This document shows positions 17,901 to 56,392 of a DNA stretch of 64,000 bases, one piece after another. Source of the DNA: Bugula neritina (taxonomy: Eukaryota; Animalia; Bryozoa); contig OZ037771.1 in assembly GCA_964035545.1 (NCBI GenBank), positions 7,597,190 to 7,661,189 on the forward strand. The letters are read 5' to 3'. The notes under the pieces are model-generated. The model was not told the origin of the DNA, ran no database searches, and saw nothing but the letters and a program-made list of their open reading frames with translations. The position numbers and the translations under genes were made by a program. The stretch's first letter is position 1; the number at the start of each line of letters is the position of its first letter.

Positions 17901-17976
17901 AAAGGCGAAAAGTTGTGTTTAATATTATACTAATCTCTACAGTTTAAGTAAAAGCAGTGAACATGTTATGACTCAC

Positions 17977-18114
17977 CTGTCTGGTAATGTATGTAAGTCA
18001 CAGAACCGTAGATGTAACTCTGTAAGTGACTCCATCTTTGGTATCACCTCATGTAATGTTCCTAACCTACTTAGAGACACATCTAATGTGTGTAGATGTG
18101 TGAGTTGGGAGAGA
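17977..18114 (-). CDS. LRR cassette exon, copy 1, exon 1 of 5
   Basis: ...LDVSLSRLGTLHEV...LTELHLRFCDLHTLPD; 138 nt. Confidence 0.92.
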
Positions 18115-24894: not shown

Positions 24895-27800
24895 CTACCA
24901 CTCTCCATAGAATAAAGGAAACAAGTAAATCTTCCTTCTACCAGTGAGAGTTTTTGTAATCACAGGAGTCTGTGTTACAGTACCTTCTGAGTCGGATCTG
25001 TTACCTGATATTTTCCTCACTCTTTCTTGTACCTTTAAATATTTCATATTCAGGTAAACATTGGTCAGTATTACTGACACTACAGCAAGAGTTAGAATGT
25101 ATTGCATCTGTAAATTCATCTACTAGTAAAAACTGTATTTGTGAATAGCAAAATTATATATACAAATAGTAAATTTATATAAAATTCAATTATATTGATA
25201 TTGAATAAAGTGGAGACTACATAACTAACACCATAATATACTGTGATGGTATTACTATACGACAGTATCTCATGACTATAACATAGTATGATTATAGTAT
25301 ATTGTAAAATATTTGTGAAGGAAAAATTCCATTTGCGTGAGAATGACTATATTATACTATGGCTATATATTACTATGACTATACTATACTATGACTATAT
25401 TATACTATGACTATATCATACTATGACTATATTATACTATGACTACACTTTACTATGACTATATTATACTATGACTATATTATACTATGACTATATTATG
25501 ACTATATTATACTATGACTATACTATGACTATATTATACTATGACTATACTATGACTATATTATACTATGACTATATTATACTATGACTATACTATACTA
25601 TGACTATATTATACTATGGCTATACTATGACTATATTATGCTATGACTACACTTTACTATGACTATACTATACTATGACTATATATTACTATGACTATAT
25701 TATACTACGACTATACTATACTATGACTATATTATACTATGACTATACTATACTATGACTATACTATACTATGACTATACTATACTATGACTATATTATA
25801 CTATGGCTATACTATGACTATATTACACTATGACTATACTATACTATGACTATACTATACTATGACTATATTACACTATGGCTATACCATGACTATACTA
25901 TACTATACTATGACTATATTATACTATGACTATATTACACCATGACTATACTATACTATGACTATATTATACTATGACTATACTATACTATGACTATATT
26001 ATACTATGACTATATTATACTATGACTATATTATACTATGACTAAACTATACTATGACTATATTATACTATGACTATACTATACTATGACTACATTATAC
26101 TATGACTATATTATACTATACTATGACTATATTATACTATGATTATACTATACTATGACTATATGACACTATGAAAAAACTCACGCAATTTTATAGTCGC
26201 TATCCCTGTGAGAAAACCCCTGATGGAAGGGGTTTTTGTTACAGCGGGCTAAGGACTTATTTAAATGAGGCACAGAAGCAATTATGACTATACTATACTA
26301 TTACATGACTATACTATACTATGACTATACTATACTATGACTATATTATACTACGACTATACTATACTATGACTATATTATACTATACTATGACTATATT
26401 ATACTATGACTATATTATACTATGACTATACTATGACTATATTATACTATGACTATATTATCCTATGACTATATTATACTATGACTATACTATGACTAGC
26501 CACTACAACTATACTATTATGACTACACCACACCAACTAATACGAAAACAGCCTCTTCTAAATAGGAAATGATGTCACAGGAAGTTACTCACAATATCAA
26601 ATAAGTCAGCAAGATCACGATGACAGCCATGTCTGTGTAAAGTCCTGACAAGTGTTCTTATCAATAATGACCCACCATCATGGAATCTCATGGAAGCACT
26701 GTCTGTTAAAATAATACAATGAGTTAAATAGTAAATATTATACAATGTATAGTAACAGTAAGTGACACTTTGCAGTAAAAACTAGTGAGAAATGCAAATT
26801 GAAAATTTGAAAACTGCGTTATTTCAGCAACGAAAGGTATATCTTGAGAAAGTCACATGGCTGGTGGGTTTCACAACTACTGGATGGTGATTGGGAGTTG
26901 TGGCCTATGATTTAGGTGAATAGGGATTAACCACACAGAATTTTTTGTAACTTAATCATCTCATTTTAAATAAAAAAACATTCAGCTAGAGAAAATACTT
27001 AGCCGAGTATTTTTAGGCAGCAGAGTATAAACTGTACAGACTAGTGTATCACAGATTAAATGAAAACTAGATAACTGTAACTCGCACACAAATAGTCTAT
27101 GTACTCAGTTCAGGTTTATGAAAGGTCATGTGATTAGACAGCACAGCACAGCTGCTAATTGCAATATTATTCTATTTGTTACTAATTTTCAATTGAATAA
27201 TGGATTTGCGGTTTGAAAATTTTGGAAGATAATACCCTGAGCAAATTTTCTTAATAAAATTATCCCATTCCTAAGAATGATGCCAGAAATACTGGCTTCT
27301 ATCAGTGGACTAAATTCTCACTTTCAAAGCAGGAGTGAAGGATTAGAAGGTCGTCAACATCAAAGTTCCTCTGTCCAGTTGAAGTCTCAGCTTCCTGTTG
27401 ATGAGTTCTGAGAGCAGAAAGTTCTGGTGAGGAGGAGTTGGTACTCTGTTGAATATTCTGTTCAGTTTGACTGACTGAGTTACCTGATTGATTAGTAACA
27501 CATGTGATATACCAACCAGTATTCTATGTATATGTATGAAGACTAGAGTATCATATAATACAGTATTACAATAGTATAATATATTCTTACTCGTATCATA
27601 TCTACACTCACCAACTCTGCACGCCTGAATAACCACAACTTTAGGCTTGCCGGCCATGTTCGGAAAATTTGTAGAGTTAATGAGACTGTAGATCTGTGTT
27701 AGAGAGACTGGCTGTGAGTCAACTCCATGAATCATTCCATTAGCTCCGTGTGCAAACAGAAACAGGAAGAACATACCATAAGTGTTATGAATCTCATCTC

Positions 27801-30800
27801 TTGTCTCTGATTGAATACACTGGAGTATCTCCTGTATATGAATATAACACAACACACACAGTATACAAACTCAGTGTGAGAGAGTCTATTCTATGAACAG
27901 GACTGACCAGCTCTAATAAACATACACTTCTATACAGTACAGAGAGAATACAAGTAAAGACAACTCCTGAGACTACATCCATATATTCAGTGTGAGTGTT
28001 GGGAGAAGAGAGAATTATTTCCTTCAGTAATTGCAGCTCAGACACAGAATGAAGCAAACATACAAACATAGGGGGAGGGGGGGGGGAGTGCGACCCAACC
28101 ATCTGTCAACATCATCTTGCAGAACAAATGCAATCAAAATATAGAGACAAGCAAGCATGTTTTTCCCCGTCTCATACTAGCCTTTAGAAAGTTAGCTCTG
28201 TGAAGCAAACGTTAGCCCAAAAGCTAAGAGTTTGCATTTCCCTAACTTAATAACTGATTCAATAGACAAGTCTACAGGCTATTATAACAGTGAAGTGAGA
28301 CATTAACCACTAATAACTAGTCACACTACGTGATAAGAAGAGGGAGACAACTACAAGTAAATAGAAATATACCTCAGCTGTGAGATCCTTCTGCTTCACA
28401 ACCTCAAATCCCATCTTCCTGAACAGAGCAAATGTGTTGTCAACATCATAACTAGAGCCAAGTCTCTCTCCTCCATTTCTATACTTGTTGTTGTTTATAA
28501 TCAGAGCTCTTCCTCTGAATGGACTCGTCATCTTGTATATCTGTAGATACAGACTATGTGATTAGTTTAGTACTTACTGGGTACATTCTATATGGAGAAT
28601 ACAATACTGAATAGAACACAATTGACCTGTTCATATTATATTATAAGCAACTGAAGAGTAAAAAATCATCCATGAGTAGACTAATATGGTTTCGGGCATA
28701 TTGTGTGGCTTCTGCTAACCAGAACAGTACTAGGAAAATTGAAAGTATAACCTAGCAGTTTGTTTCATAGAATAGTAACCCATCATTCACACTTAACGCA
28801 CAGTAGGCTGTAACAACAAATATCAGCCATTTTTACAAATGTCTGAACTTCCTGTATGGCGTTGCGGTACGTAATCAATCACAAACAAGCACTGCTTAAT
28901 TCAAAAATGTTGGGCGCACTTCTATTGGACAGAAAAATTTTTGCGTCAACGCATTGCATATAATTGTCCAATGAGGTGTCATAAACCATACTTAATAGCA
29001 GATTTTGAAAACTTCAGCCCGAACACATCAAAAATGGCTGATATTGTACGCTATGGGTGACGGTACAGTAAGCGTGAATGAGGGGTAAATCAATCACAAG
29101 ACTGTTGAAGGAAGGTTATTTCAAAATCACAGTAAAGTTGTTAATATATAGTGCTAGAAATAAGGTGACATATTTTTGCAATTAAGACAGCTGGTAAGTA
29201 GTTGACCAGATGAGAGTGGAAAGAAGAGCCAAGGCTATACAGAGACAATAGAGAGGAGAGCCAAGGCTATACAGAGACGGAGAGGAGAACCAAGGCTATA
29301 CAGAGATAACAAAGAGGAGAGCCAAGGCTATACAGAGGTAAAGAGGAGAGCCAAGGTTATACAGAGATAACAGAGAAGAGAGCCAAGGCTATACAGAGAT
29401 AATAGAGAGGAGAGCCAAGGCTATACAGAGATAACAGAGAGGAGAGCCAAGGCTATACAGAGATAACAAAGAGAAGAGCCAAGGCTATACAGAGATAACA
29501 GAGAGGAGAGCCAAGGCTATACAGAGATAACAGAGAAGAGAACCAAGGCTATAGAGTATTCAACATGACATACAAACCTTTGAAGTGTTGATGAAGAGAG
29601 ACTTGATACTCTGATTAGTAGTAGGAACTAGTGTCAACTTGGTAAGATCTTCTGAAGTGGAGGTATTACTTTCTTCTTCATCCGAAACATCACTCAGTAC
29701 ATCATCAGTACCAACAGTATGAGTAGCAGCTCCACTGTGTCCAATATTATCTACATGTACAGGAAACATCACATAAACAGCTCACAGAAATGTAATGAAA
29801 CCAACAACCTGCAGGAACAACTTCAACTGTCAATAACAAACATGGAGAATCAGAAAGGAAGAAAGTTATTCCTAATCAATTCACTAGGAGTAAGTTTAAT
29901 TCAAGATACCTGGTGGCTTGTAGTTGGTCTTCACAAAATCACTCAGTTTCTGCAGCTCATCTCCAGAAAGCTGGAAAGCTGCAATAGAAGTATGAATTAT
30001 GGAGGTTGCTATTACTTGAACAGTACATCACCATCTGAATATGCTATAAATAACCTAAGAGAAGATAATCATACTAACTCGGGTGTAAGAAACAAGCTGG
30101 GACATCTCTGTATGTTCCACATCTACCAGGTGATAAATCTGAAATCATGGGAAGGGATTCACCATCTTTTGGAGGTCGACACCAGGGTGGGTTAATGAAC
30201 CTCTTTGGACGCTTTTCTCCAACCAATGGGCAGTGAGCACACAAGTTGACACAGGTGATTTTACTTGCTCTCCATGTGGAGTTGACGTACTTTACGGTTG
30301 AATGAACTGAAGTGGTCAACATCTTCCAAGCATTGCCTATCTGTCGACAAGCAGACGTTACAGAGATAGTGAGTTTACGAGATTTGTGGTCATGCAGCAA
30401 CTGCAGGGTGTAAGCTTCGTCTCTCAGCTCCACTCCATTCTTTCTTACAGCTTTTTCACCACAAGCCGGGAGATCATTGAGAAGTTTCACAGAAATCTGG
30501 TGGTAAACGTACTGAGGGGGAGTCAAGCCACCAAACACCATGTCTACAGACAGCTTTACAGGTTGCCTCCTGGAGGCAGTCAAGTCGGTGAAATACTCCT
30601 GTGAGAAGTATGGCATAGTGTAACTTAGTCTCCGGGATGAATCCTTCATCTCGAATAACAACTGGAAAGATTGCAGCAATGCGACTGCCACCTTCATCTT
30701 GTCACTCGTAGAGAAGCTGGTCTCTGCTATCAGAAGATGCTGAAACAGCTGCTCACTCATCCTGCCAGTTCGAACAAACTCTTGAGCCAAATTATTAAAC

Positions 30801-33800
30801 TCCGTTTCATTTTCTATCAACGGATTGTCAAGTGAATCCTCTTCAATCGCTGACCGTCGATTGCTCCACACTTCCATCTCGTGAGTGAAGAACACGTGGA
30901 GCAGCTTTGTGACCACAGAGATGTCGTAGAATACCAGAGACTGCAAATTCTCCCTATCCTGGTACCAAATGAGATGGCCGCTGTTATGCATGTACGAGAG
31001 AATCACTCTCAGCTGGTCTTCACTTGCCAACTCGCATTCAATGACATGTTGAAGCACTTCTGGAAATGTCTTGTAACTTCCATGGAATGAGTTGAATGTT
31101 TGAGCAACTTTTCTCCACAGAGTAGGCACCTTCTTCACGACTAGTTTACTGTCAGCTATGATATGACTTCTCAGCTGATCAAACACCTCTTCATATTCAT
31201 CACCCACAACATATATATCTTGTTTTTGAAACATCTCTTGGCACTGAAAAAGAGAAACTTGTGCAAAAGAGCTGGAATAATTCTCTTTAGAATTTTCTTC
31301 TAGTTGTATCAAATTGAATACACTTTTGGTGTGGAAAAAGAACAGCCTTTCTAGCTCTTCAAATCCATCTGCACTGTAAGCATCTCGGTGAGTGAAAACC
31401 AGTTTGGGTGCTCTGAGTCTAGGATTCGCCAGGTACAGATGTGAGAGCCAATCAAAATATGTGCATCGAACTGCTTCATTACCATTCACCTCTAAACAAA
31501 GCTCTTCAAACTCCTTTAGATTCACAACCACAATAGGAATACAGTTCTGTTTCAATGTGAACTGGTAGGTAGATTGGTAGATTTCATTACCACCAAAATC
31601 TATGAACTGAAGAACATTGCCACCAACCACTAACTTTTCCATATTGAAGACACGAGTTGTTTCATCTTCCACTGCATCAGCCGCTCTATTGGTTAGTTCC
31701 CGTTTGCCATCTGATCTCACCAGCGTTTTTGCTAGGCTGGTTTTGCCAGACAGCGATCTACCCACTAGAGCGACTGTAGCTTCAGAAACTTCTACATGAC
31801 CACCAGACTTAAGATCTTTATAATACTTTCTGATAGCCGGTAGTCCGTCTATACACACAGCATAAGCTGGAAATGTGAGTGATTCACAGTCGTTGCATTT
31901 CAGTTCAGTCAGATTAGGCATGTTGAGAAGTTGAGGAGTTAAAGATGTCATCCGATAGTTGAATGACACGTTCAGGTGTTGGAGATTCTTGAGTTGACCA
32001 ACACTACCAAGTAAGTATACAGTATAACTTTATTATTATTCTATATCAAATGTATTATGCTTAAAAGTAAAACTTGATTAAATACATAATAGTTAGTATC
32101 TAACATAGCCTGGGAGAAAAATAGTGTTTGACAGCAAAACTGTGGCAAATGACTAGAACACAGGCCAAACTGTAAAGATAGACTATAATGATTATTTGAC
32201 TTAACAGTACAACCATTACAGTGGAAAATTGAATATTGATCCAAAATTTGCAGATTTTATTAAATTTCAAAACTTTGGATCTACTATAATACAATTGCAA
32301 TATATGGAAATTGTATTATTGCAAAATTATTACAGCCATTCGTAAATGTTTTGACACCTGCATATGCTTTTTGCAGCTTTGATAAATGGCAAAACAGAAT
32401 TTTCAATCTCCTAATAATTCAAATGATTTAAAGTTTTGTTTTGTTTTGTTTTCTTTATTTCCATCAAAAAAAAACAAAAGGACAAAAAAATACAAATATA
32501 CAACAGTAACACAAAAAGAGCTAAATTCAATTTATATATAATATCAATCGAAGTCAAGATGGGGGCCCATGTGCTCAGTAGCATAGCTATTCAAGGAGCG
32601 GGGCCCAAGTGGCAGTTGAAAAAATAGTGGGAACTATTAATTCAGATTAAGTTAAAGATTTTAGTAGGTGCTTTTTCAACAATATTTTAAATGTGGCAGA
32701 GCTTTGATGATGTCTTAAAGTCAGAGGTAGCTTATTCCAATTGCTAGACATCTGGTAGGACACTTGACGATGACCTGCTGCGGAGGTAGAGAGAGGTAAG
32801 GGTAAGGAAAGTTCAGAATGTCTGGTGAGGTAAGTTGGTGGTTGTTTGGTGTGAGATGGAGTATAATAAGCTGAATGACCAAGAAGACATAGGCGGTAGA
32901 TATACAAGAGATCAATAGGAAGAATTTCTGCTTTGATAAATAGAGGTGACGTGTGTTCAGTAGGTGATTTGTGGAAAATAATGCGAATAATGCGTTTTTG
33001 AATTAAAAGCAACTTGTTCAGATGGGTTTTAGGGGCATTTCCCCAGGCTTCTAAGCAATATGTAAGTTTGCTGTTTATCAGACTGTTATATAATAAAATC
33101 AAAGCTTTGTATGGTAAAAACTTTGAAGCTAAGTATATCATACCAGCTACTTTGTTGAGCTGAGCCCTTAAATAATTTATATGAGCACACCAGTTTAAGT
33201 TAATGTCAATGACTACACCTAAAAATTTTATTTCTGAGCTAGGTGAGAGAGGTATATTGTCAATATGGATGGTACTGTTAAATACAAAATTCTTTTGGTA
33301 GTTTTTAACAATGATATAGTTTGTTTTCGTTAAGTTTAGAGTTAGTTTGTTTGCAATGCACCAGTTATTAACTTTATTTAGTGAGGAGTTTATATTTCCA
33401 AAATCAGCATTTAAATCTTTGCTCTTCCAAAAAAGATTCGTGTCGTCGGCAAACAGAATAGTATCAAATAAAGGACAATGGGTAGCTAAATCATTTATGT
33501 ACAGCAGAAAGAGCACAGGGCACAAGATAGAGCCCTGGGGAACTCCACAGGTGATATGCAAGGAATTGGATATACTGTTCTCTATTATAACATGCTGTGT
33601 TCGATTGGTCAAGTAGTTTTGGATTAAACTTATGGAGTGAGAATCAAAATTGTAATCTCGTAGTTTCTGTAGCAAAATATTGTGGTTGATTGTATCGAAT
33701 GCTTTTGAGAAATCAATGAAAATACCCAATATTACTAATGAGTCATTAAGTGCTTTGAAGGATTGGTCTGAAAACTTAAACAGTGCGTCTTGTGCACCCT

Positions 33801-48800: not shown

Positions 48801-51800
48801 CCTCTAGAACCCAAACGCCACGTAAAATTAGTAGTTTGCGGCACCGCGATACTATCACACCATCTAGATCTATAAATTAGGGGTAGTTCTGTTTTACTCT
48901 CTATAATTTTATAAAGTTTATGCTTCATTTCAAAACTAGGCGTTACGTGAGGCATCCACCACGATACTTTATCCAACGTTATTTTTCCCGCGTCTACGCC
49001 GTTAGCTCTAAATATGGCATTATCATTAGTATCACGTACTAGCGTTAATTGATGTTTTATACCGTACAAAACTTTTTCGTAATCGTCGGCGAATCCGAAC
49101 AAATGTCTAAGATCCACTTTAATACTAAAAGTACCTTTAGGATCTGGCTTTTGTATAATATAAATTTGACGCGCGTTAAAACCTAAATTAGCGGCGGCAG
49201 CGGCTGCGGTAGTATCTTTTGACCACAACTGATTAAGACCTCTCGACTTACCGTAGTCGTCGGGATAAGTTAGTAAACCCATCATGGTCGAAGCGTGTCC
49301 GGGATTATTTATATATTCCAAGTCGTGTCCGTCGAGTTGATATCTAATACTTTTAAACAAATAAGCCATACCGTTATTCGTTAACGTTACTAAGTCGGCG
49401 TCGGCGTAAGCGGTTCCGTCATTTTTCGTTAAACGTCCTTCGATAATTAAATAACTTTTACTCGGCTGAACGTACAAATCTTGTTGATTAATAACTATTC
49501 TAATTTCACTGGGAGTATTTAAATTCGTTCCCGTTACGGGTTCGTATTCATGCACCTGATCGCGCTCTACGCTCGTATCGAGTACAATTTTTTGTGTAAT
49601 GTTTAGAGAATCCATTTATTATAGTAAAATAATTTCTTAATAAGCTATAGCTTGTCCGCTTCCTTCTAAAATATTACTTATATTATTATTGTTTAATATA
49701 TTTTTAGTTTGATTAAGCTTTTGTAGTATAGCTTGACTTTTAGCGTTTAACTTTTTTTGTCTTCTTTTTTTAATCGCGTTAACAATTTTTTCACCGGCCG
49801 CGGTACCCGCTTTAGCTATAGCCTTTTTACCTAATTCTCTTACGCTGGAATTACTAGCTATTTTAGTTACTATATTCCTAATGGTATCAAATATTCCACC
49901 ACCGGCGTAGTGTCTTTGTAATCGTTGTCTTTTATCGTAAACGTACATTTATTATACGAGAATACTTTTATAATAGTCACGAGTAATAATTTTCATTCTA
50001 AGTAATTCGTCTAATATAGACACAATTTCGTTTCGTACTCCCGTATTTCCGGCTTTAGCGCTAGAAATTAAAAGTTCGAGTCGTTCTACTAAAGCGTTAG
50101 GATCAGACGATAAATATACTACTCCATCACCGACTTGCCTTTTAGCTTTTTTACTATCGGCGAGTTTCGCTCTCTGAGGATATAATTGTTCCCAAATAGG
50201 TCTAACAATATTTTTCCATTTTTCACTATTTTTATCTATAGGACCGTGTTTACTTTGATATATAGCGCCGCTATTATCGAGTATATTAGCGTAATTCGCT
50301 AAATCATTATCATCGTATCCTATAGGCGTTTTACGCGTTAAAAGACTTAAAAGTCCTCTAGTCGCCGGATATTCTTCGTTGTCAAAAATTATTTTACCAT
50401 CGTTAAAGCTTATAGGTTTTGTACCAATAACGTGTCTATTACCATCCCACTTTACGTTATAAGCGCCGGGTTCTAAGCCAGCTAAAGCGTTTTGAGTAAA
50501 TTCGTCTAAATTTATAACTCCATCCGTTATAGCCGGTTGAACATTATAATTGGGTAATGTAAGCAATTGTTTTAACGCGTCAGTCGTTTGAGCTTGCGAA
50601 GCAATTACGGGTTCAAAATATTTTTCTTGAGCTATAGCGGCATTTAATTCTCGCTCGCGTTCTCGTTTAAAATTTTCTTTTAATTTATTCTTTCGAAAAA
50701 TAAAATCTTGTACGGTTTTATCTCTTTTTATAGGGTCGTGAATCTTTAAGTAACTCATTTATTATATATTAATTTGTGTCTACTTTTTGTGGACACAAAC
50801 ACATTTGTGTCTACTTTTTGTGGACACAAACACATTTGTGTCTACTTTTTATGGACACAAACACATTTGTGTCTACTTTTTATGGACACAAACACATTTG
50901 TGTCCACTTTTGTGTCTAGTGTCCACATTTGTGTCCACTTTTGTGTCTAGTGTCCACTATAATCGTTCTAAAACGTTTAAATTTACCCAAGAGTTTTGAG
51001 AATCGGGATAACCTAACCATTTTACTAAAGCCTTTTTACCTTTCTTTTTAATTACGCGCTCTATTCTATACATTTCTTGACTCGTCTTTTGTAATTCCTG
51101 TTCGTAAAAAGATCCTTGAATTTCTTCTCCACCCGAGTCGGTTAATTTATAAGTAGTCGGATTCGTATATAATATTTTACTTATAGTAAACACCTCCTCC
51201 GTCCATCTAACGGTATAACCTTTTTCAAACGTTCGTTTTTTACGCGGTATACGCACCCTATCGCCTATAGCGAATTTATGTTTAGAAGGCGCTGGTAAGT
51301 TTGGATATAATTTTACGCGTACTTTATTTTCGTTAGAAGGGTCACTAGCTTCAATCGGTGTCATTCCAATAGACGAATGTTTAGTCTCGTTATATCGTTT
51401 TACTAAATCTTTTAGTACGTCTATATATTTATAAGTATTATTAGCCGAAAAATATTTAAACATTCGCTCTTTCATTGTTCTATTCCACCTCTCTACTACG
51501 CTAGACTTTTCTTCATTTTCCGTAGAATATAAGTCTATTAAAGACTTTACGTCTTTGTTATAAAATTCTTTTCCTTTGTCAACCCATAAATGTTGTGGCT
51601 TACGACGAGTTAAAATCGTTTTTAAAGCTAAAGCAACGGCTTTTCCAGTCTTATTTTTTAAAGGTATTATCCAACCGTATTTTGAAAACACGTCTATTAC
51701 CGTTAGTAAATATTTATAACCGTTATTAAATTTAGAGAATTCGGTCATATCAACCAAGTCAGCCGCCCAAATATTATCAATACCCGATACCCAAACTCGT

Positions 51801-54800
51801 CTTTTACGAAATTTTTTTTGTACGGGTTTATGTAGTTCTTCGGCTAACTCGTTCGTCCATCCCCATCCTAAGCGTTTTTTCGCACCTATTATTGCCGAGG
51901 CGAAACGACTGTGTCGCTGTTCGGAGGGCGTAGGATTAGGTATAGCTTTCAGTTCGTCTAGCATATTTTTATCGCATATTTCGTTTCTAGTCTTAGTATC
52001 TTTATTAAGCGCGTAACACACGTCGTGTCTCATGGCTATAGCGTCATCTCGATCTACCGGTTTACTCCATTCTTTAGGAGTCATGTCGTCATTTAAACGC
52101 TTATTTAATTTAGTACCCGGTCCTAAAAAATTATGGCCTGGATAATGCAATTCGAAGGGTAAATTATTTATTAAATTATTCGCTAAACCCGACCCAACGA
52201 ATGTAGTTTTTTTACATCCGCATTGACCGCAATTACCGTAACCCATTAGTCTATTATTTTTACTTACTCTCTTTTCGTAATTAAGAGTTTTTGTTTTAGT
52301 TTTACACTTACAACAATACATTTATTATAATAAATGGAAATAGAAAATCTTTCGTGGAAAAACGAAATTAATCGTAATAATAATCCTTTACTTCCTAAAA
52401 GCATAAGAGGTCTTATCGTTGGAAAGTCTGGATGCGGTAAAACTACGTTACTTTGTAACTTACTATTACAACCTAATTGGCTCGATTACGATAAACTTAT
52501 GATTTACGGTAAAAGTCTTTCTCAACCCGAATATATAAATATGAGAAAGGCTTTCGAACGTAAATTAACTAAAGAAGAAATTTTAAATTTTTTTAAAAAT
52601 AGTGACGCGATAATAAATTCGGGTATAAACGTAAATCGTGTTTTAAAAAATAGTAAAGGTAACGGTAATATAAACGCCGAATTTATCGAATCTAGTGACG
52701 ACGTTTATGATCCTAGCGAATTAGACGTTAGTAATAAAAATTTAATAATATTCGATGATTTAATGTTGGAAAAACAAAAAACTTGCGAAAGTTATTACGT
52801 AAGAGGACGACACAATAACGTCGATTGTTTTTATTTGTCGCAAAATTATTTTAAGCTGCCTAGAAATACTATTCGAGAAAACGCTAATTTTATTTGCTTA
52901 TTTCCTCAAGACGGAAAAAATTTAAATCATATATATCAAGATCACGTAAACGGAGATTTAACGTTAAACGAATTTAAAAACTGTTGTTATAAAGGATGGC
53001 AAAAACCTCACGGCTTTATTACTTTAGATCTTTCTTCCTCAAAAAATAATGGGAGGTATAGACACGGGTTAGACGAATTTTATATACCGTAATAAATGAG
53101 TGTTTATAAATTTGGAAAATCATTAGCGAAAGCTAAAAAAGAAAATTATATCGAAAGAGTCGTAACTAAAAATAATGACGTTTTTATACAATCTTTTAGT
53201 ACAACAATTAATATAGGAATGTTATTGGGATATATAGTGGATAAACCGATAGAATTAAAATACGCTTTATTAGAATTTCAACATCTTCCAGCTAATAATA
53301 ATAATCCTTTATATTGGAAAGATAAAAATTTAACTTTAATTATTGGTGATGTTAATAACCCTCTCGAACACAATACTAAAGAATATATAATTCAAGGAGG
53401 CGTTGCGCGCGTAAAAATACCTATGTTGGAATATATTGAGAGCGATAAAAATATTGGATTAGTATTACACTGCTCAAACGATTATACTAGTCGTAAACCC
53501 AATGACATTACGGTTAATGACAACGCGCCTATAGCTTTACCGTTTGAATTAGTGTCGTTAAAACTTTACTACAATTATAAATGAGTGTTTATAAATTCGG
53601 AGGAAGCGAAAAAACAAAAATAGATACAAAAAAATTCGTTTTAATAAACGGTAGTAGTACTCTTACGGGTACGTTAGATATGGGTGAAAATAAAATATCT
53701 AGAGTTATTAATCCGGTTGACGATCAAGACGTAGCCACAAAAAAATACGTTGACGATACGAGTATGCCTAAAATACAAAACCCTATTAATCAATTAACTA
53801 TATCAACCGACGATGGACGCGTTATAGATAGCGATTTAAAAGTTGACGATGTCGTTACGAAAACTAATATATCTAATTACGCCGTACCTCTTATACGAGA
53901 CCCGAGTGAAAAATTAACCGTATCAACTAATACGGGTAATATTATAGATAGTAGCTTAAGCGTTAGCGATATCGTTACGACTAGTAATATAAATAATTTC
54001 GCTATAAATAAAATACAACCAGCGAATGAAAAATTAACCGTTTCAACTACTTCGGGTAATGTCGCGGATAGTAGTTTAAGCGTTAGCGATGTTGTTACGA
54101 CTAGTAATATAAATAATTTCGCTATGAATAAAATACAACCAATAATCGGAAATAAATTATTAATGCTTTCGAGCGATGGTAATATTGTAGAAACGGGTAT
54201 AAATATTTCGGATCTTATTACAATAAATAATATAAATAATTACGCTATTCCTAAATTACAAGGAGCAGTTGGTAATAAATTAGTATTATCAACGAATGAT
54301 GGAGGTATAACCGAATCTACTGAATCTTTACCAACATTTCCAAGTTATAACGTTTAAACACTAAATTATTATATTCTTAGCGTATAATAATTTATTATCT
54401 TACTAATAGTATCGTATTGTGAGCTAGGACCATCCACCCTAAAAAAATTTTTTTTCTTATTTTAAAAAAAATATTTTTCTAAATAAAATTTATAATATTA
54501 CACTACTTTTTTTATAATATTACTAATAGAGTAGTAGCAGGTGGATGCGTCCTGGATCGCTCTTCTGACACTGTCGAGTCGAAGACTCGACGGTGGAAGA
54601 AGAGTGAGCCAGGACCATCCACCTGCTACTACTTGTATATATAAACTATAGCTGTGTTCAGAACATATTAAATGTAGTTGATTGTTTTACTCCATATTTC
54701 ACTACATCTAAAAATATAGAACTTTATCTCACAATTTTAGCAACTCAAACAACTTCTAAAGCACGGATAATACACTAGAAGGAACGGAGATAAAACTAAT

Positions 54801-56392
54801 AGCAGTGAATACTTTGAAGAATACGAAACAAACCTAAGGCTACAAGCTGTGCAAGTAACATTATATTTGATTTGTGACTTCCTAATGAATATTTAGCTAT
54901 CCATTTATCTACTGGCAGAACAAATATTAAAGTTATCCCCACATGCAGGTAATTAGCTATGATGTGTGAGTCACCAGAAGTCATTGTTGACCTCTTCCCC
55001 AGCAGCTTCAGCTCAAACTAATATAATTCCATTCCAGTACAATAGTGGAAAAAATGCAATACTTTTTAAATTCAATTATTTATGGGTCTTTATGATTTTC
55101 TTTTTAGGGGTTTGGTTGAACATAATTTAGTTTGCACTTTTTCTCATCAAGCACACCGGCTTTTCCAAAATTCCACTCTTACTGCACCCACATTTATAAT
55201 GCATGTCAAACAGAATGACTACTAAGGTGCAGTAGAGATATGAAGGAATATTGCTGACATGCCATACAAGTATAACTCATCAAACACTTCAACATTCCAG
55301 TAAAGAGTCAGTGAGTGACAACTGAAAAATCTACAGCAAGATACACAGCTCAAGTATATATTATTATCCAAAGAGAATTCATGTTATAGAGGATAGAGAT
55401 ATTGTGACCTTAAACATGTTGATAACAAAGTGATGGTAGACTTACTATTCTAAACTGTTGATACTGGTTAGCCGTTGAATACGCAAGTTAGTCACAAGTG
55501 GAGCAAACTCTGTAACAGCAGATGGCAGATCTCCCTCTATAAGTAGGTCAGTGATCACATGACCTGAACAGAGCTTCTTTATTTCCTCCTTTGTATAGAG
55601 TTCTGCAGATTTGTAGAACAACCCTCTTTTGTTAATAGGATCCATACCAGAGTGCCTCCACCAACACTTGTATTTCTCTGCTAATAACAAATGATCTAGT
55701 TTTAGTACATCCGTACCCAATAATAGAGTAAATATAATATCACCTCCTTTCTAGTTCATTTATCTATGTTAATATTTTAATAGTATAAAGTACATCATTT
55801 TACTGTTGAATTACTTATATAATAATTGAAAATATAATCCAGTAGTAAACATATTCCTATATTCAAAGAGACAAACATACTAATAGTTGAGGCATCAACA
55901 TGAAGATTAATAGGAATAAAACTGAGACTTTCTTCAACTTTTTATATCAGGTAGACTGAAAACAAATGAGAAACTTATCTATTAGACAATGGTGATGTTT
56001 CTATTTAAGATTTCACATACAACATGTTGATAAGAAAATACTAGCAAGTATAAGAAATGGCAAGAATTAGAAATAAACATATTTTAATGTGATCCAAAAA
56101 TTTATCAACAGATCCATTAAGCTACGTGCAGATAAAAGCCACAGAAAGTGTACAGAAACACCAAAGTATAAATATAGTTCAGAGAAGAAACTTAAAGGGG
56201 GACAACAAAGTCTTTATTTTTAACTTTCAAGCTGGAAGATGTAATTGAAACCCATTCAGGTATATTTAAAGAATACTGTATTCAGGTGTGTATTTTACCA
56301 TTCTCCAGACCAACTAATATTGTATACGGACCTGTTTGTGAAGTTGCTGCTGTTACTTCATCCTCAGAACTGATTACAGAGTTGGTAGCCAT
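24895..56392 (-). CDS. LRR-Roc-COR-caspase gene copy 2; intact frame of about 1177 aa with 2 LRR cassettes
   Basis: Exons: 56332-56392, 55446-55677, 38750-38887, 35778-35915, 30079-32003, 29910-29978, 29578-29750, 28373-28540, 27612-27831, 27322-27483, 26593-26702, 24895-25032; total 3534 nt, no stop seen before the terminal TAG. The first exon is the least certain. Confidence 0.85.
25345..26500. repeat. Expanded (ACTAT/ACTATG)n satellite with a unique ~110-bp insert
   Basis: Visible directly; non-repetitive insert at about 26173-26282. Confidence 0.95.
28779..29085. mobile_element. Degenerate MITE (piggyBac-like CCC..GGG ends); also at 63658-63967
   Basis: CCCATCATTCACACTTA / TAAGCGTGAATGAGGGG inverted ends; TTAA TSD not intact; the segment is absent from copy 1. 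Confidence 0.5.
29220..29555. repeat. Minisatellite, about 32-bp unit, 11 copies
   Basis: CCAAGG(C/T)TATA recurs every 29-32 bp. Confidence 0.92.
30079..32003 (-). CDS. Large exon of copy 2: last LRRs, Roc GTPase and COR (intact)
   Basis: ORF 30074..31969 with GRSLSGKTSL, DFGGNE, THRD; donor A|GTTAGT lies just before the apparent stop. Confidence 0.92.
32435..34379 (-). mobile_element. 5'-truncated CR1-group LINE (reverse transcriptase), only in copy 2
   Basis: RT motifs NYRPISIL, QFGF, FIDFSKAFD, GVPQGSIL, LFADD (ORF 32647..34062); frameshift near 34035 from ORF 34013..34387; AATAAA plus (AAAAC)n tail at about 32435-32460; about 10 bp of target missing relative to copy 1 (11716-11725), no TSD. 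Confidence 0.92.
35778..35915 (-). CDS. LRR cassette exon, copy 2, exon 2 of 2
   Basis: ...LVVSLNEL...LTELYLMKCDLHTLPD; 138 nt. Confidence 0.93.
36711..38364. mobile_element. hAT-type element at the same site as 14373-16026
   Basis: CAGTGGCTCTCA ... TGGGAACCACTG; TSD GTCTAGGC/GTTTAGGC. Confidence 0.85.
38750..38887 (-). CDS. LRR cassette exon, copy 2, exon 1 of 2
   Basis: ...LDVSENKL...LTELHLEHCDLHTLPD; 138 nt. Confidence 0.93.
39651..39866 (+). repeat. Polinton left TIR; first 104 nt form a hairpin
   Basis: Reverse complement of 54390-54633 apart from small indels. Confidence 0.93.
40092..40616 (-). CDS. Polinton terminal paralog family protein 3 (unknown function)
   Basis: Shares LYWTDK, ISGAEHNVP, YPSHKPS, ALPFH, KLYYN with its neighbours. 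Confidence 0.8.
   Translation of the reverse strand: MNIYKFSKVDITTNKAFISGIINNNKFYYYENINSFTVDLINDYLVNKPIKITHALIQFYGEHYTKNKTKALYWTDKKIGLHIRNSVNPFDESKENLFYTISGAEHNVPYSKININKTVNANNNFSFTIALSSDYPSHKPSNVILTDTPASEITDTALPFHWVYFKLYYNSINE
40613..41149 (-). CDS. Polinton terminal paralog family protein 2
   Basis: Same motifs; stop overlaps the next start (TAAATGA-type coupling). Confidence 0.8.
   Translation of the reverse strand: MNSVYIFGNSAKANIINEKPYITNIIIPSYFIENIRDDYFEGILIRDFLVDEPIEITNILVHFYGEQAHNTKELYWTDKRLNLEIRDSANTFKYSDVAENIFFSYDISGAEHNVPFSEINVNKIIEANKNFSLSIILSKTYPSHKPSNVILTDTPDNGITNTALPFHYVLVKLYYNYK
41146..41658 (-). CDS. Polinton terminal paralog family protein 1
   Basis: Same motifs; TAAATG start. 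Confidence 0.8.
   Translation of the reverse strand: MTSVYIFGNSANIINEQPYITNIIIPSEFTYYLGGFTTTLIKDFLVDEPIEITNILIQFYGEQAHNTKKLYWTDKRIGLHIRNSTELFNPSNENTFYNISGNEHNVPFSEINANKIIKANKNFKLTMSLSKNYPSHKPSDVILIDTPASEITDAALPFHYVLVKLYYNYK
41659..42060 (-). CDS. Adenain-like maturation cysteine protease
   Basis: ILNLD...GTHWVA, YFDSFG, Q...ICGHLC catalytic His/Asp/Cys pattern. Confidence 0.92.
   Translation of the reverse strand: MSIKLENKALSNIELEFAIKKLKIPNFRGVFSRNDLPNKPRKKECGILNLDDLMGNGTHWVAWYKNNNKKYYFDSFGLHPPLEIMKYLKPPIFYNTERVQKFNTVICGHLCLYWLKEMSKHESPQLIINKLLI
42057..44666 (-). CDS. polB: Protein-primed family B DNA polymerase (C-terminal part)
   Basis: YADFE, HNLSGYD, YLDANNLYG, KLMNNSVFGK, TDTDS; endonuclease VII-like Zn motif CYIC..DHCH..G.YRGAAH..CN. 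Confidence 0.96.
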   Translation of the reverse strand: MAKKIIIRILYVSAKHICVNCMNSFRSNESLKKHQDWCLKNDSVTTTFPKLEDKIKFQSSHYCRGMRVPFVIYADFECFTKPIQGCNPNFKESYTNQYQQHEPLGFGYYIVSVTGECNYRSYTKETEDEDIGEQFIRLLELDIKNIYKKHKFAKTMRITTDEQKSFELAENCYICEKELSNDRVRDHCHLTGNYRGAAHKNCNLNYKIPKFYPIFIHNLSGYDAHLFIKNLGGEPSCIPNTEEKYISFSKKLLVDEFTNKEGEKIKVTREIRFLNSYKFMSSNLASLVANLKRDDFKHLGEYYKEKQLDLVLRKGVFPYDYFNNLSVLDETSLPPKEKFYSSLTEQNISEEDYIHAQNVWREFNMRTFKEYHNLYMKVDVLHLADVFENFRNVCLKYYKLDPAWYYTAPGLSWDAMLKTTELKLDPITDVNQLLFFEKAIRGGVSMISHRYAKANNKYMENYNASEPSSYITYLDANNLYGWAMSKNLPTGNFKWMTEKRCKNLEKSLNFPPSFLEVDLEYSKELHDSHKDYPFCPERLTINKVEKLVPNLNNKKNYIIHYEALKQCLMYGLKLTKIHRGITFNESNKLEKYIKLNTELRTLARSDFEKDFFKLMNNSVFGKTMEDIRNRVNVKLVTSESEAKKFTNQLNFKSFTIFSENLIAVHMNVTKLKFDKPVYLGAAILDISKTLMYDFHYEYIKHKYNNKAQLLFTDTDSLMYHVQTEDFYKDILPDIENKFDTSNYPKNHKSGIPTGKNKKVIGKFKDEAGGKQITEFVGLRAKLYSYKMDDIEEKKCKGINKTTRDNRITFDDYKECLLTRRNQFRTINVLRSHKHTMYAETINKVALSAEDDKRIILEDGITTVPYGYNK
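44629..45672 (-). CDS. N-terminal (terminal-protein) region of pPolB, out of frame with the catalytic part
   Basis: Helix-extension-helix-like start (LKALAKERGLKRYSRLKKAELI); YQPLNGSSWIDLP, INPKNKDDKCFMWA, INVF and LLY..HY motifs typical of Polinton PolB N-termini. Confidence 0.8.
   Translation of the reverse strand: MEFNTKITVKALKALAKERGLKRYSRLKKAELIRLLSPMDEPVPNIGQAPLIPTPVKKIMREIFTQTTRNIKKWVIKPITKIINPIKDKIMALYNQPKLKEQAANGWFQTYEIKGLPGYDIDSFSKLVKLNVIELLKPTIKVKIFIYCEMKKHNISTGEIIIETMPFTSNVEIILASTNINEVYDEIIQRIKENFASLNAKGSSWMFKAIKKMEININKYQPLNGSSWIDLPKEIKLKKAVINPKNKDDKCFMWAILMGVYPVNKNIERISNYKEHINKLSWEGVEFPATKESIDAFEKVNPSIGINVFMWNGNTINLWRKTSGQNKIINLLYITDGEKNHYTYIIR
45751..45978 (-). CDS. Small hypothetical Polinton protein
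   Basis: ORF from MDLTVELL; no motif recognised. Confidence 0.45.
   Translation of the reverse strand: MDLTVELLDKLIAETEQKKYTPLLEYLYIPVINNISLKEINFRTRKQIPNINRYFYIKSILKREAYKLKEENRDV
46021..46500 (+). CDS. Polinton protein with two predicted transmembrane helices
   Basis: Two hydrophobic stretches between coiled segments; C-terminal SKFLSD..I...EY; TAAATG start. Confidence 0.75.
   Translation: MDFRREKLELLNDEIIKLENEYEQKLNRFNWLSKSLKIISGLCGTTNLICGVIITALINANVTKQTLLPLSIIVSIMSVITTSISSQDAKLIKSTLMYLDIYTFIKDSKLEINSMLSKFLSDSHIDEQEYDAITEKYKNINNVILDKKSDIIVARNNVC
46588..46980 (-). CDS. Hypothetical Polinton protein with short repeated (E/I)xIYK motifs
   Basis: 130-aa ORF with TAAATG start. Confidence 0.6.
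   Translation of the reverse strand: MATVITYKSLDGTPITETIYKNNDCEKRVYEGGDIKERIIYKKFNILNEMTNSSNECGLLEEITYNNKKEIIYKENDGKLKIKTIYKSKEIIQELNVGLINYAAARIPSFFTKLKYAEDEIEKRRNDALH
47000..47569 (-). CDS. Putative virion core / membrane-active precursor protein
   Basis: MSGG|FLGALLGIATRVIPTLLK amphipathic segment after an adenain-type site; basic and Gly-rich. Confidence 0.7.
   Translation of the reverse strand: MGYCEIIGNVPQAQKQKIMNAYRSGKGCVIKLPLESGNDKLVVTKTQNDNILKALNANKKNITLEMSPSLVKTNASMSGGFLGALLGIATRVIPTLLKTIIPGVLSGAASAGVERAIKGKGLYLKKGGCVCSVEPNLNGSITLKPVASSNLMKGNGLYLKQGSSYIKGEGLILGPNSPFKNIPLLGMLL
47582..48340 (-). CDS. Minor capsid protein (penton, single jelly roll)
   Basis: PPIEL..YE..L, LP.G.Y....L, LGF, D..G..LD...E.....HLR pattern; adjacent to the MCP. 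Confidence 0.82.
   Translation of the reverse strand: MDNRILREIADNTASKQTMTIGVTDTKTRIITQLNPPIELNKNKKYEMCLISLDTFYSFPNISTDRNSYRWSKDGGTTWHLVSLPVGVYELDQLEEAIQDEIVKEGGNRNGITLQANKVTFRIILKLKPNYQIDFNVENSLRDVLGFNAAIYNQPYIEATNIVNILNINAIHVQVDCINGSYIDGTYKPVIYSFFPSVSPGYKIIEKPHNLIYLPVHVKYIKTLTVTVTDQKGNLLDLSGEQLSIRFHLREV
48341..49615 (-). CDS. Major capsid protein (double jelly roll)
   Basis: 424 aa, beta-rich; PSKSYL.IEG, LFGF..DY.K, WWMPHV.P, KPKYIIVGFQ, LNSERYP, LFVIDVSKQ. Confidence 0.87.
   Translation of the reverse strand: MDSLNITQKIVLDTSVERDQVHEYEPVTGTNLNTPSEIRIVINQQDLYVQPSKSYLIIEGRLTKNDGTAYADADLVTLTNNGMAYLFKSIRYQLDGHDLEYINNPGHASTMMGLLTYPDDYGKSRGLNQLWSKDTTAAAAAANLGFNARQIYIIQKPDPKGTFSIKVDLRHLFGFADDYEKVLYGIKHQLTLVRDTNDNAIFRANGVDAGKITLDKVSWWMPHVTPSFEMKHKLYKIIESKTELPLIYRSRWCDSIAVPQTTNFTWRLGSRGDTEKPKYIIVGFQTDKNESQTTNPAVFDHVNVKSVYAMLNSERYPEVDYDIDFAKMKFSRVYGDASKFCGEYYGINELIAYSNVLPSEYKDLYALFVIDVSKQSEALKSSVADIQLRVQFSQNVPANTQAYALILSDKTMSLSSDGNNLKVI
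49637..49948 (-). CDS. Small basic virion precursor with an amphipathic helix
   Basis: YAGGGIFDTIRNIVTKIAS; K/R-rich; LEGSG near the C-terminus. Confidence 0.65.
   Translation of the reverse strand: MYVYDKRQRLQRHYAGGGIFDTIRNIVTKIASNSSVRELGKKAIAKAGTAAGEKIVNAIKKRRQKKLNAKSQAILQKLNQTKNILNNNNISNILEGSGQAIAY
49952..50758 (-). CDS. Conserved Polinton protein (PZ-like)
   Basis: Y..T.GL..LL and C-terminal DPN.LVERL.LL..S..AGN....NEI..I.DEL motif. Confidence 0.75.
   Translation of the reverse strand: MSYLKIHDPIKRDKTVQDFIFRKNKLKENFKRERERELNAAIAQEKYFEPVIASQAQTTDALKQLLTLPNYNVQPAITDGVINLDEFTQNALAGLEPGAYNVKWDGNRHVIGTKPISFNDGKIIFDNEEYPATRGLLSLLTRKTPIGYDDNDLANYANILDNSGAIYQSKHGPIDKNSEKWKNIVRPIWEQLYPQRAKLADSKKAKRQVGDGVVYLSSDPNALVERLELLISSAKAGNTGVRNEIVSILDELLRMKIITRDYYKSILV
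50772..50958. repeat. 31-bp palindromic tandem repeat inside the Polinton (4 full copies plus degenerate copies)
   Basis: ATTTGTGTCTACTTTTT(G/A)TGGACACAAACAC at 50772, 50803, 50834 and 50865. Confidence 0.92.
50957..52321 (-). CDS. int: Retroviral-like (rve) integrase with chromodomain, fused to an N-terminal Zn ribbon and a parvovirus-type PLA2 domain
   Basis: WAADLVD, IDVFSKY, WVDKGKEF, VERWNRT (DDE); LVKWLGY...NSWV chromodomain; PGHNFLGPG and D..A.RHDVCY PLA2 motifs; CCKC...CGQC. Confidence 0.93.
   Translation of the reverse strand: MYCCKCKTKTKTLNYEKRVSKNNRLMGYGNCGQCGCKKTTFVGSGLANNLINNLPFELHYPGHNFLGPGTKLNKRLNDDMTPKEWSKPVDRDDAIAMRHDVCYALNKDTKTRNEICDKNMLDELKAIPNPTPSEQRHSRFASAIIGAKKRLGWGWTNELAEELHKPVQKKFRKRRVWVSGIDNIWAADLVDMTEFSKFNNGYKYLLTVIDVFSKYGWIIPLKNKTGKAVALALKTILTRRKPQHLWVDKGKEFYNKDVKSLIDLYSTENEEKSSVVERWNRTMKERMFKYFSANNTYKYIDVLKDLVKRYNETKHSSIGMTPIEASDPSNENKVRVKLYPNLPAPSKHKFAIGDRVRIPRKKRTFEKGYTVRWTEEVFTISKILYTNPTTYKLTDSGGEEIQGSFYEQELQKTSQEMYRIERVIKKKGKKALVKWLGYPDSQNSWVNLNVLERL
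52334..53092 (+). CDS. A32/FtsK-like DNA packaging ATPase
   Basis: Walker A GKSGCGKT, Walker B IIFDD, RGRH, LSQ, IREN. Confidence 0.94.
   Translation: MEIENLSWKNEINRNNNPLLPKSIRGLIVGKSGCGKTTLLCNLLLQPNWLDYDKLMIYGKSLSQPEYINMRKAFERKLTKEEILNFFKNSDAIINSGINVNRVLKNSKGNGNINAEFIESSDDVYDPSELDVSNKNLIIFDDLMLEKQKTCESYYVRGRHNNVDCFYLSQNYFKLPRNTIRENANFICLFPQDGKNLNHIYQDHVNGDLTLNEFKNCCYKGWQKPHGFITLDLSSSKNNGRYRHGLDEFYIP
53096..53584 (+). CDS. Divergent fourth member of the terminal paralog family
   Basis: LYWKDK, Y.SRKP.D, ALPF...KLYYNYK shared with the proteins at 40092-41658. Confidence 0.78.
   Translation: MSVYKFGKSLAKAKKENYIERVVTKNNDVFIQSFSTTINIGMLLGYIVDKPIELKYALLEFQHLPANNNNPLYWKDKNLTLIIGDVNNPLEHNTKEYIIQGGVARVKIPMLEYIESDKNIGLVLHCSNDYTSRKPNDITVNDNAPIALPFELVSLKLYYNYK
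53581..54357 (+). CDS. Putative fibre/spike shaft protein
   Basis: GTLDMGENKISRVINPVDDQDVATKKYVD fibre/adhesin-type motif, then about 5 repeats of about 39 aa (KIQ...KLT.ST..G...DS.L.V.D.VT..NI.N.A). Confidence 0.65.
   Translation: MSVYKFGGSEKTKIDTKKFVLINGSSTLTGTLDMGENKISRVINPVDDQDVATKKYVDDTSMPKIQNPINQLTISTDDGRVIDSDLKVDDVVTKTNISNYAVPLIRDPSEKLTVSTNTGNIIDSSLSVSDIVTTSNINNFAINKIQPANEKLTVSTTSGNVADSSLSVSDVVTTSNINNFAMNKIQPIIGNKLLMLSSDGNIVETGINISDLITINNINNYAIPKLQGAVGNKLVLSTNDGGITESTESLPTFPSYNV
54390..54633 (-). repeat. Polinton right TIR with hairpin at 54530-54633
   Basis: Inverted copy of 39651-39866. Confidence 0.93.

Follow-up and report, generated by a model that had tools for sequence, protein, structure and literature searches.

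Predicted LRR-Roc-COR-caspase fusion genes in a tandem array of the bryozoan Bugula neritina

Results

A tandem array on the minus strand

The window analysed here is a stretch of 64,000 nucleotides (nt) from the cheilostome bryozoan Bugula neritina (assembly GCA_964035545.1, contig OZ037771.1, positions 7,597,190 to 7,661,189), and its minus strand carries copies of a gene predicted to join leucine-rich repeats (LRRs), a Roc GTPase, a COR domain and a caspase in one chain. Self-comparison of the window revealed a unit of ~20.4 kb that is present three times, with 90–95% identity between repeats. Copy 1 (~3.4–20.6 kb; 3429–20602) has 15 exons with five LRR cassettes, copy 2 (56392–24895) has 12 exons with two cassettes, and copy 3 begins at 60.6 kb and continues past the window end, so that only part of it is covered. 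In a protein search, the best matches to the largest minus-strand open reading frame (ORF) were two B. neritina proteins (87% and 93% identical), and the next-closest relatives were RefSeq proteins of Watersipora subatra, also a cheilostome. Overall, this is a bryozoan-specific gene family arranged as a tandem array; a bacterial or viral origin was ruled out by the spliceosomal introns of the gene and the animal affinities of its caspase. A tandem array had been proposed in an earlier note on this DNA, and the threefold unit bears it out, but copy 1 carries a TAA in Roc and copy 3 is cut off by the window end. The array is also less pristine than that note implied, given the nonsense codon of copy 1 and two mobile elements in the introns of copy 2.

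Copy 2 is the sole complete and intact copy within the window, and its product runs from LRRs through Roc-COR and a linker of 80 amino acids (aa) to a complete caspase. Boundaries, phases and stops were checked with a script that handles each exon separately and forms only the split codons. By this script, AG and GT flank the exons at every boundary, all introns are GT-AG, in-frame stops number zero and the phase chain is unbroken over the 12 exons (0>1>2>2>2>1>1>0>0>1>1>0). The coding sequence adds up to 3552 nt (1183 aa and the stop codon), as against 1177 aa in the model of the earlier note.

The gene opens with exon 1 (56332–56392; 61 nt, phase 0 to 1), whose ATG lies at 56392 and whose boundary was inferred from phase and the copy 1 homologue. 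Exon 2 (55446–55695; 250 nt, phase 1 to 2) contains the beginning of the LRR region and ends in a GTAAGT donor. Two LRR cassette exons of 138 nt and phase 2-2 follow, the first (a, 38750–38887) encoding two 23-aa LRRs and the second (b) lying at 35778–35915. The Roc-COR exon (30079–32003; 1925 nt, phase 2 to 1) has its actual start at 32003 and holds the last LRRs, Roc, COR-A and COR-B. Its open frame ends in LHPS and a stop at 30077, and a donor, A/GTTAGT at 30079/30078 (slashes mark exon boundaries here and below), precedes that stop. Two linker exons, L1 (29910–29978; 69 nt, phase 1 to 1) and L2 (29578–29750; 173 nt, phase 1 to 0), lead into five caspase exons. C1 (28373–28540) starts the p20 subunit, opens with IYKMTSPFRGRALIINN and holds the Arg of R-x-G-S, and C2 (27612–27831) carries the catalytic His in AHG and the catalytic Cys in QACRVG. 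C3 (27322–27483) encodes an inter-subunit linker of ~42 aa and the first p10 strand, C4 (26593–26702) the p10 core (S-M-R ... GSLLIR) and C5 (24895–25032) the p10 end, with the stop TAG at 24897–24895. The donor, both linker exons with their lengths and phases, and the caspase motifs lie exactly where the earlier note had put them; the boundaries and phases that it described for copies 1 and 2 hold in both, and the caspase exons of copy 3 and a B. neritina locus in GenBank share them.

Two introns of copy 2 are repetitive. Tandem repeats with units of ~32 nt (ctctgtatagccttggctctcctct...) occupy 29219–29553 in the intron between L2 and C1, and a long run of short repeats, translating as MTILYYDY..., occupies 25288–26572 in the intron between C4 and C5. 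Much of the difference in length between copies is due to these repeats.

Copy 1 has LRR cassettes at 18114–17977, 16936–16799, 16552–16415, 13576–13439 and 13199–13062, a Roc-COR exon at 11281–9360, linker exons at 9259–9191 (L1) and 9031–8859 (L2), and caspase exons C1–C5 at 8099–3429, all on the minus strand. An in-frame TAA (10984–10986) interrupts its Roc directly after the P-loop, where copy 2 reads AAA (31705–31703), and copy 1 as sequenced is a pseudogene or null allele. Because all exons of copy 1 apart from this one are open, the inactivation is recent or allelic. The Roc-COR exon of copy 3 lies beyond the window end, and its caspase exons C1–C5 (63472–63308, 62770–62551, 62422–62261, 61641–61532 and 60794–60651, minus strand) are all intact. 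Overall, the caspase exons are intact in all three copies and 98–99% identical.

The GenBank B. neritina locus (L002; VXIV02002257.1) is 88–93% identical to the window, equal to the range among the window's own repeats, and the two are paralogous or allelic. Its Roc-COR exon contains two 1-nt deletions, with abundant stops upstream of them, which may be real or assembly errors, and its C5 exon contains a 1-nt gap. Because of the two deletions in Roc-COR, the locus is annotated as split genes, namely an LRR-only model followed by a 505-aa COR-caspase model, and for this reason the full architecture is not obvious in that annotation.

Comparative evidence for the fused splice chain

We searched either with single exons, given by reference, or with natural full-length relatives as queries. 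In two GenBank B. neritina models, EB796_002463 and EB796_015160, the junctions from COR through L1 and L2 into the caspase are identical to those of copy 2, and the proteins read ...CLLHP/TFQL...KPP/DNIGH...NTSK/IYKM.... The gene models of this species were built by AUGUSTUS with transcriptome hints (PMC7576161). Between copies 1 and 2, exons L1–C5 are 98.3% identical without a single indel, compared with 95.5% for the four short introns that align cleanly (Fisher p=5e-4 versus exons) and ~80% for all introns together, the long ones being full of indels. By this comparison, the exons are conserved better than the introns between copies, beyond chance.

More distant relatives retain the same layout. 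A paralogue that is 64% identical (L005), found on the one Logan contig examined, which is unspliced genomic DNA, again has the phase-1 GTTAGT donor at the end of its Roc-COR exon. The intron that follows is 399 nt long, as against 100 nt in the window, and the next exon is a 69-nt L1 whose phases match those of the window and which encodes the motif QL...L..FV..NY.P. An apparent match of 96 of 100 positions between the 100-nt window intron and the 399-nt intron was discarded as an artefact of cheap gaps. Two further relatives (L006 and L007; 36–38% identical), from metagenome contigs of the Joint Genome Institute (JGI), have exons for the acidic linker, for p20 (both exons) and for p10 further downstream in the same orientation. 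At ~30% identity, the Watersipora subatra RefSeq proteins XP_067948342 and XP_067947674 (1413 and 1419 aa) combine LRRs and Roc/COR with a full Peptidase_C14 domain (E 5e-40 and 1.5e-36), and at least nine further caspase-carrying paralogues bring the Watersipora total to at least 11 over the six chromosome-scale contigs seen. When a Watersipora protein was mapped on its own gene, the exon boundaries at the COR end (..QPC/DTLS..), C1, C2 and C4/C5 matched those of the window. The family as a whole comprises 81 cluster representatives at E<1e-30.

Three linker motifs are common to Bugula and Watersipora (PC/.L...E..L..aL, SD.SD.EEEGYCDE and K.La.N..KVY.MS), and such conservation between the two genera marks the linker as more than a random spacer. 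L1 itself extends a conserved motif that begins in COR-B (VP.PL..PC/.L...E..L..aL). The ratio of nonsynonymous to synonymous substitution rates (dN/dS) is 0.36–0.42 for Roc-COR and 0.32–0.57 for the caspase, which points to purifying selection on the family except at LRR surface positions. The comparative case for the splice chain is strong, and it indicates a genuine LRR-Roc-COR-caspase fusion, conserved across cheilostome bryozoans (Bugula and Watersipora) and uncharacterised. Independent public gene models, Watersipora introns, linker motifs and the ROCO fold all lend strong support to the gene structure and architecture proposed in the earlier note.

The Roc-COR module

In an exon-by-exon Pfam scan, Roc scored 30.0 bits (gathering score, 27). 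A profile of the family matched the Roc domains of MbRoco2, CtRoco, LRRK1 and LRRK2 in the PDB (1.8e-20 to 1e-10), its matches to PDB chains being confined to the LRR and Roc regions. We therefore rely for COR on the fold, as described next.

The product of the Roc-COR exon was modelled by AlphaFold from an alignment of 36 relatives, with a mean predicted local distance difference test (pLDDT) score of 86 and a predicted template-modelling (pTM) score of 0.87. When the model was compared with the PDB using Foldseek, the top 37 matches were all ROCO proteins (C. tepidum Roco, LRRK1, LRRK2 and M. barkeri Roco2) and covered Roc and both COR halves. The alignments to CtRoco, LRRK1 and LRRK2 spanned 570–700 columns, and the COR-only entry 3dpt was matched with E 1.3e-9 and a template-modelling (TM) score of 0.66. 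The COR assignment, which is sub-threshold by sequence, is therefore settled by structure prediction and Foldseek. The sequence and structural features that define ROCO proteins are present, namely a Ras-like Roc with P-loop, switch and G4 and a COR directly C-terminal to it, within one exon (32003–30079).

The Roc motifs of copy 2 are GRSLSGKTS (P-loop), DFGG and THRD. Across the 36 relatives, G70, K76, T105, D124, G126/127 and T193-H194-x-D196, which correspond to the P-loop, the switch I Thr, DxGG and THxD, are fully or almost fully conserved. At the COR-B end, a C-x-H-C ... C motif (window 30140–30330; alignment C577, H579, C580 and C617) is invariant in the 36 bryozoan relatives and also occurs in an LRR-ROCO-CARD protein of the brachiopod genus Lingula, described below; it may form a metal-binding knuckle directly before the output domain.

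The linker and the caspase

Across the family, L1 carries a conserved helix motif (QL..E..L..FV), and L2 a conserved acidic SDVSDEEE patch that is predicted to be disordered. Pfam detected Peptidase_C14 on C1 and C2 (2e-9 and 6e-13), the p10 exons align to Watersipora caspase domains, and among PDB sequences the caspase comes closest to CED-3 and caspases-2, -8, -9 and -3. SHG/AHG, QAC and the Arg of R-x-G-S are conserved in 14/14 aligned family members, and R-x-G-S is nearly invariant. The residues that we take, following established caspase numbering, to form the S1 pocket are the R of ERLGS (C1), the Q of QACR (C2) and the R of SMR (C4), and all are present. The domain thus has the make-up of a C14A caspase: p20 and p10, a His-Cys dyad and an S1 pocket for Asp.

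Neither CARD nor DED was found by Pfam in any exon or relative scanned, so the usual prodomain of initiator caspases is missing. LRR-Roc-COR takes the place of the prodomain, and the enzyme is initiator-like, outside the CARD and DED classes. The inter-subunit linker is long and disordered (~42 aa in copy 2, ~70 aa in the relative P0175), and long loops between the subunits are a trait of initiator caspases. FDVDD is the only Asp cluster in this linker in copy 2. Judged from these motifs, the caspase appears to be complete and of the initiator type. In a model of a full-length Watersipora protein, read per domain for order and disorder alone and with no bearing on domain packing (pTM 0.49), the LRRs, Roc-COR and the caspase are folded, the L1 motif is helical, and the acidic linker and the ~70-aa inter-subunit loop are disordered.

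LRR cassettes

Each LRR cassette exon is 138 nt long, of phase 2-2, and encodes two 23-residue repeats. The number of cassettes is five in copy 1, two in copy 2 and five in the GenBank locus (4419–6966). Computed over 12 cassettes, diversity (pi) was 0.068 for the cassette exons and 0.19–0.37 in the flanking introns. Within the exons, codons 15, 37 and 38 reached pi ~0.5, with 5–8 different residues among the 12 cassettes, and codons 12, 33 and 35 were variable to a lesser extent. The variable codons sit at positions 3, 5, 7 and 8 of LxxLxLxxN, those at 15, 37 and 38 being positions 7/8. These four positions form the solvent-exposed concave face in LRR receptors. The pattern suggests diversifying selection, combined with the duplication or loss of exons.

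Mobile elements in the introns of copy 2

A Polinton/Maverick element of 14,983 bp (39651–54633) lies in the intron that separates exon 2 from LRR cassette a. It is flanked by a 6-bp target-site duplication, TGTATA (39645–39650 and 54634–54639), the empty site of which is kept in copy 1 at 18861–18866, and it has terminal inverted repeats of ~130 nt and termini AG...CT. Its ORFs are all open and comprise a polymerase B, an integrase, a double-jelly-roll (DJR) capsid protein, an A32-like ATPase and an adenain-like protease. Pfam matches were rve with Chromo, DJR-like (5e-58), Pox_A32 and, weakly, Peptidase_C5; the integrase ORF contains rve, chromo and PLA2-like domains. The 869-aa ORF was named as the protein-primed DNA polymerase B by eye from its translation, its sole Pfam match being Endonuclease_7. 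All features of the Polinton/Maverick group were thus found (polymerase B, integrase, capsid protein, ATPase, protease, terminal inverted repeats and the 6-bp duplication), and the complete-looking element points to a recent insertion into the copy 2 intron.

The Polinton also contains three tandem paralogous ORFs of ~170–178 aa at 40092–41658 on the minus strand and a fourth relative in the opposite orientation (53096–53584, plus strand), all four ending in ...LPFH.V..KLYYNYK. The one that was scanned (40613–41149) had no Pfam match. They may represent a duplicated fibre or host-recognition module. Lastly, a fragment of the LINE type (long interspersed nuclear element; 32434–34368, minus strand) with an RVT_1 reverse transcriptase (1e-35) sits in the intron that precedes the Roc-COR exon, and copy 1 lacks it.

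Comparison with known systems

The RefSeq label of the Watersipora relatives refers to MFHAS1/MASL1-type ROCO proteins, with which the bryozoan proteins share N-terminal LRRs, LRRK2-like G motifs and COR-A/COR-B. MFHAS1 has no enzymatic output after COR, whereas the bryozoan proteins have a conserved linker and a full caspase at that point, and similarity to non-bryozoan MFHAS1 homologues is low (E ~1e-16 to 1e-19). A protein labelled 'MFHAS1 homolog', XP_013379138 of Lingula anatina, has the order LRR-Roc-COR-A-COR-B-CARD. Against the profile of the bryozoan family it aligned along the entire module (hhalign probability 100%, E 5e-41), with its CARD starting exactly at the point where the bryozoan linker and caspase start. 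Aligned in this way, a recruiter of CARD-caspases in one lineage appears to be replaced by a carrier of the caspase in another. ROCO-CARD and ROCO-death-domain genes have also been reported for Trichoplax (PMC11378527). The Lingula and Trichoplax proteins thus resemble the bryozoan ones in sensor, switch and the position of a death-pathway output after COR-B; they carry only an adaptor domain, with a separate caspase to be recruited, whereas in the bryozoan proteins the protease is built in and a CARD is absent.

Conflict systems of the form LRR-AP-GTPase(Roc)-COR-effector, in which the effector can be caspase-like, have been described computationally in bacteria (Kaur et al. 2021, eLife, PMC8195603), and they follow the same logic, with rapidly evolving LRRs, Roc-COR, a C-terminal effector and many paralogues per genome. 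Those systems are prokaryotic with a bacterial caspase-like domain, whereas the bryozoan proteins have an animal p20/p10 caspase, and the likeness does not imply descent.

Inflammasomes and the apoptosome consist of an LRR or other repeat sensor, a switch dependent on nucleoside triphosphates (NTPs) and an initiator caspase activated by induced proximity. The bryozoan proteins are functionally analogous to NLRC4/NLRP1 with caspase-1, Apaf-1 with caspase-9 and CED-4 with CED-3 in joining a sensor, an NTP switch and proximity activation of an initiator caspase. They differ in having a Ras-like GTPase with COR in place of a STAND ATPase ring, and in that a dimer with a covalently attached caspase is expected, rather than a wheel that recruits the caspase by CARD-CARD contact. 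No NACHT or NB-ARC domain was found by Pfam in the window exons or the bryozoan relatives, so that the proteins fall outside the NLR/STAND class and the likeness is one of analogy. LRRK2, LRRK1 and DAPK1 similarly place a C-terminal catalytic domain behind a Roc-COR tandem in one chain. DAPK1 links ROCO proteins to cell death. The output of those three is a kinase, in contrast to the bryozoan protease, which comes with no ankyrin, armadillo or WD40 repeats. In brown algae, LRR-ROCO genes with phase-2 LRR exons, variable copy number and positive selection at the concave face are regarded as candidate immune receptors (PMC11378527, PMC3341825). Both groups have symmetrical phase-2 LRR cassettes in variable number with variation at the concave face; the algal exons are 72 bp long and encode one LRR, and the protein ends after COR, whereas the bryozoan exons are 138 nt long and encode two LRRs, and a caspase follows.

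A candidate for the fusion outside Bryozoa, on two contigs of the European Nucleotide Archive (ENA) assembly ERZ20067936 (L003 and L004; ptg000010l and ptg000183l), was not counted, its COR reaching an hhalign probability of 49%. The two single-ORF proteins, from an apparently intron-poor eukaryote, are a NACHT-Roc-CARD-caspase protein (1737 aa) and one with a Roc-like region and a caspase (1698 aa).

Databases label the bryozoan proteins 'hypothetical protein', 'CASP8' or 'MFHAS1 homolog', and a full-text literature search of incomplete coverage found no paper on an animal ROCO-caspase. The claim of the earlier note that this is not a characterised system thus stands for animals in the literature searched, but the proteins are already present in public annotation and the bacterial class was described in 2021 (PMC8195603).

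Discussion

The gene is predicted to encode a single chain of LRRs, Roc GTPase, COR, a helix with an acidic linker, and a caspase, and we consider that it probably acts as a sensor, switch and protease in one. In such a mechanism, the LRRs would bind, or be released by, a non-self or danger ligand, sensing of which would shift the nucleotide state of Roc and with it the monomer or dimer state set by COR. Dimerisation would bring two caspase domains together for initiator-like activation by induced proximity, followed by cleavage at FDVDD in the inter-subunit linker and/or at the conserved acidic SDxSD linker patch. Cells would die, or substrates be processed, as part of immunity or colony allorecognition. 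An LRR-ROCO-CARD adaptor and its CARD-caspase partner would, in effect, have collapsed into one polypeptide. This NLR-like reading is the best supported of those considered; its support is indirect and comes from the hypervariable LRR positions, the CARD-bearing relative in Lingula and the intact G and caspase motifs.

Several observations weigh against it. The public gene models that use the fused junctions are predictions, and no RNA or junction read was found, a search with the COR-linker-caspase model P0006 returning the model itself, one paralogue and ordinary caspases. By sequence, COR-A (30.8; gathering score, 35.3) and COR-B (17–22) both fall below the Pfam gathering scores, and the global confidence of the full-length model is low. 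Copy 1 carries a nonsense codon in Roc, the 15-kb Polinton and the LINE in the introns of copy 2 might impair expression, and dN/dS of 0.3–0.6 reflects moderate constraint only. Motifs deviate in some paralogues: the JGI contigs L006 (5537–5770) and L007 (6983–7219) have HACSG in place of QACSG, and Watersipora P0055 has a degenerate P-loop (GKSSSRKK, residues ~505–530); these three may have a decoy or regulatory role within the family. An ATG in C1 (YK-M-TSPF; ORF 28310–28531) could start a stand-alone short caspase. Finally, in the bacterial homologue C. tepidum Roco, GTP is reported to drive monomerisation (PMC5714945, PMC11052575), and either nucleotide state could be the active one here.

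Three other explanations were weighed. If the locus held two transcription units, a ROCO gene ending in HPS and a stop and a separate caspase gene with a short prodomain, the fused models would be artefacts of prediction read-through; a stop does close the Roc-COR frame 2 nt past the donor, the ATG of C1 is in frame, and prokaryote-style gene callers give the Roc-COR exon alone on many contigs. Yet the length, phase, splice sites and motifs of L1 and L2 are kept from 98% to ~30% identity, the intron at the COR end has an equal position in Watersipora, and the at least 11 Watersipora RefSeq models are fused. The Met of C1 is absent from Watersipora P0056 and hence not conserved, and L1 continues a COR-B motif, all of which makes separate genes highly improbable. 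The family could also be real and the array in the window dead or dying, without present function at this locus. We think this unlikely: copy 2 is fully open with all splice sites intact, the caspase exons of the three copies are intact and nearly identical, and dN/dS is below 1. The signs of decay are the TAA in copy 1, the presence of only two LRR cassettes in copy 2 as against five in copy 1 and the GenBank locus, the Polinton and LINE insertions, and the 1-nt deletions and gap of the GenBank locus, but insertions in introns need not disable a gene and a lone nonsense codon could be allelic or recent.

A fused protein might instead serve as an initiator caspase for developmental death (polypide regression, brown-body cycles and metamorphosis), with the LRRs as scaffold and Roc as timer, and not as an immune receptor. 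The caspase is closest to CED-3 and caspases-2, -8, -9 and -3, the roles of human ROCO proteins lie mostly in trafficking and signalling and not in the sensing of pathogens, and nothing in this analysis links the gene to infection. A developmental role is also rather doubtful, however, given the size of the family, with its 81 cluster representatives and at least 11 caspase-bearing Watersipora paralogues, and given that tandem copies, variable cassette number and hypervariability confined to the ligand-face LRR positions are hallmarks of recognition receptors and would not be expected of a housekeeping switch for cell death. The LRR-ROCO genes of brown algae, which show the same phase-2 LRR-exon pattern, have been read as candidate immune receptors (PMC11378527).

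A broader proposal is more tentative than the sensor-switch-protease reading itself. Bryozoans may possess an expanded, NLR-independent class of intracellular receptors in which a GTPase-gated ROCO dimer activates its own caspase, with diversity generated by duplication or loss of hypervariable phase-2 LRR cassettes and possibly by alternative splicing. Such receptors could act in immunity or allorecognition and would parallel, in animals, the LRR-AP-GTPase-caspase conflict systems of bacteria.

If the sensor-switch-protease reading is correct, these proteins would be a caspase-activating platform that needs neither an adaptor nor a STAND ATPase, with sensor, switch and executioner in one chain behind an LRRK2-type Roc-COR gate, and would stand as a third architecture beside the apoptosome and the inflammasome. 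For work on ROCO proteins and LRRK2, they would offer a natural protein that couples the disputed link between nucleotide state and dimerisation to an easy readout, caspase activity or cell death. Taken together, the bryozoan fusion, the Lingula LRR-ROCO-CARD protein and the bacterial LRR-AP-GTPase-caspase systems would form a Rosetta-stone case tying ROCO GTPases to caspase activation across kingdoms. To our knowledge, the immunity and allorecognition genes of bryozoans, which are colonial animals, are essentially unknown, and the family described here would be the first candidate family of intracellular receptors for them.

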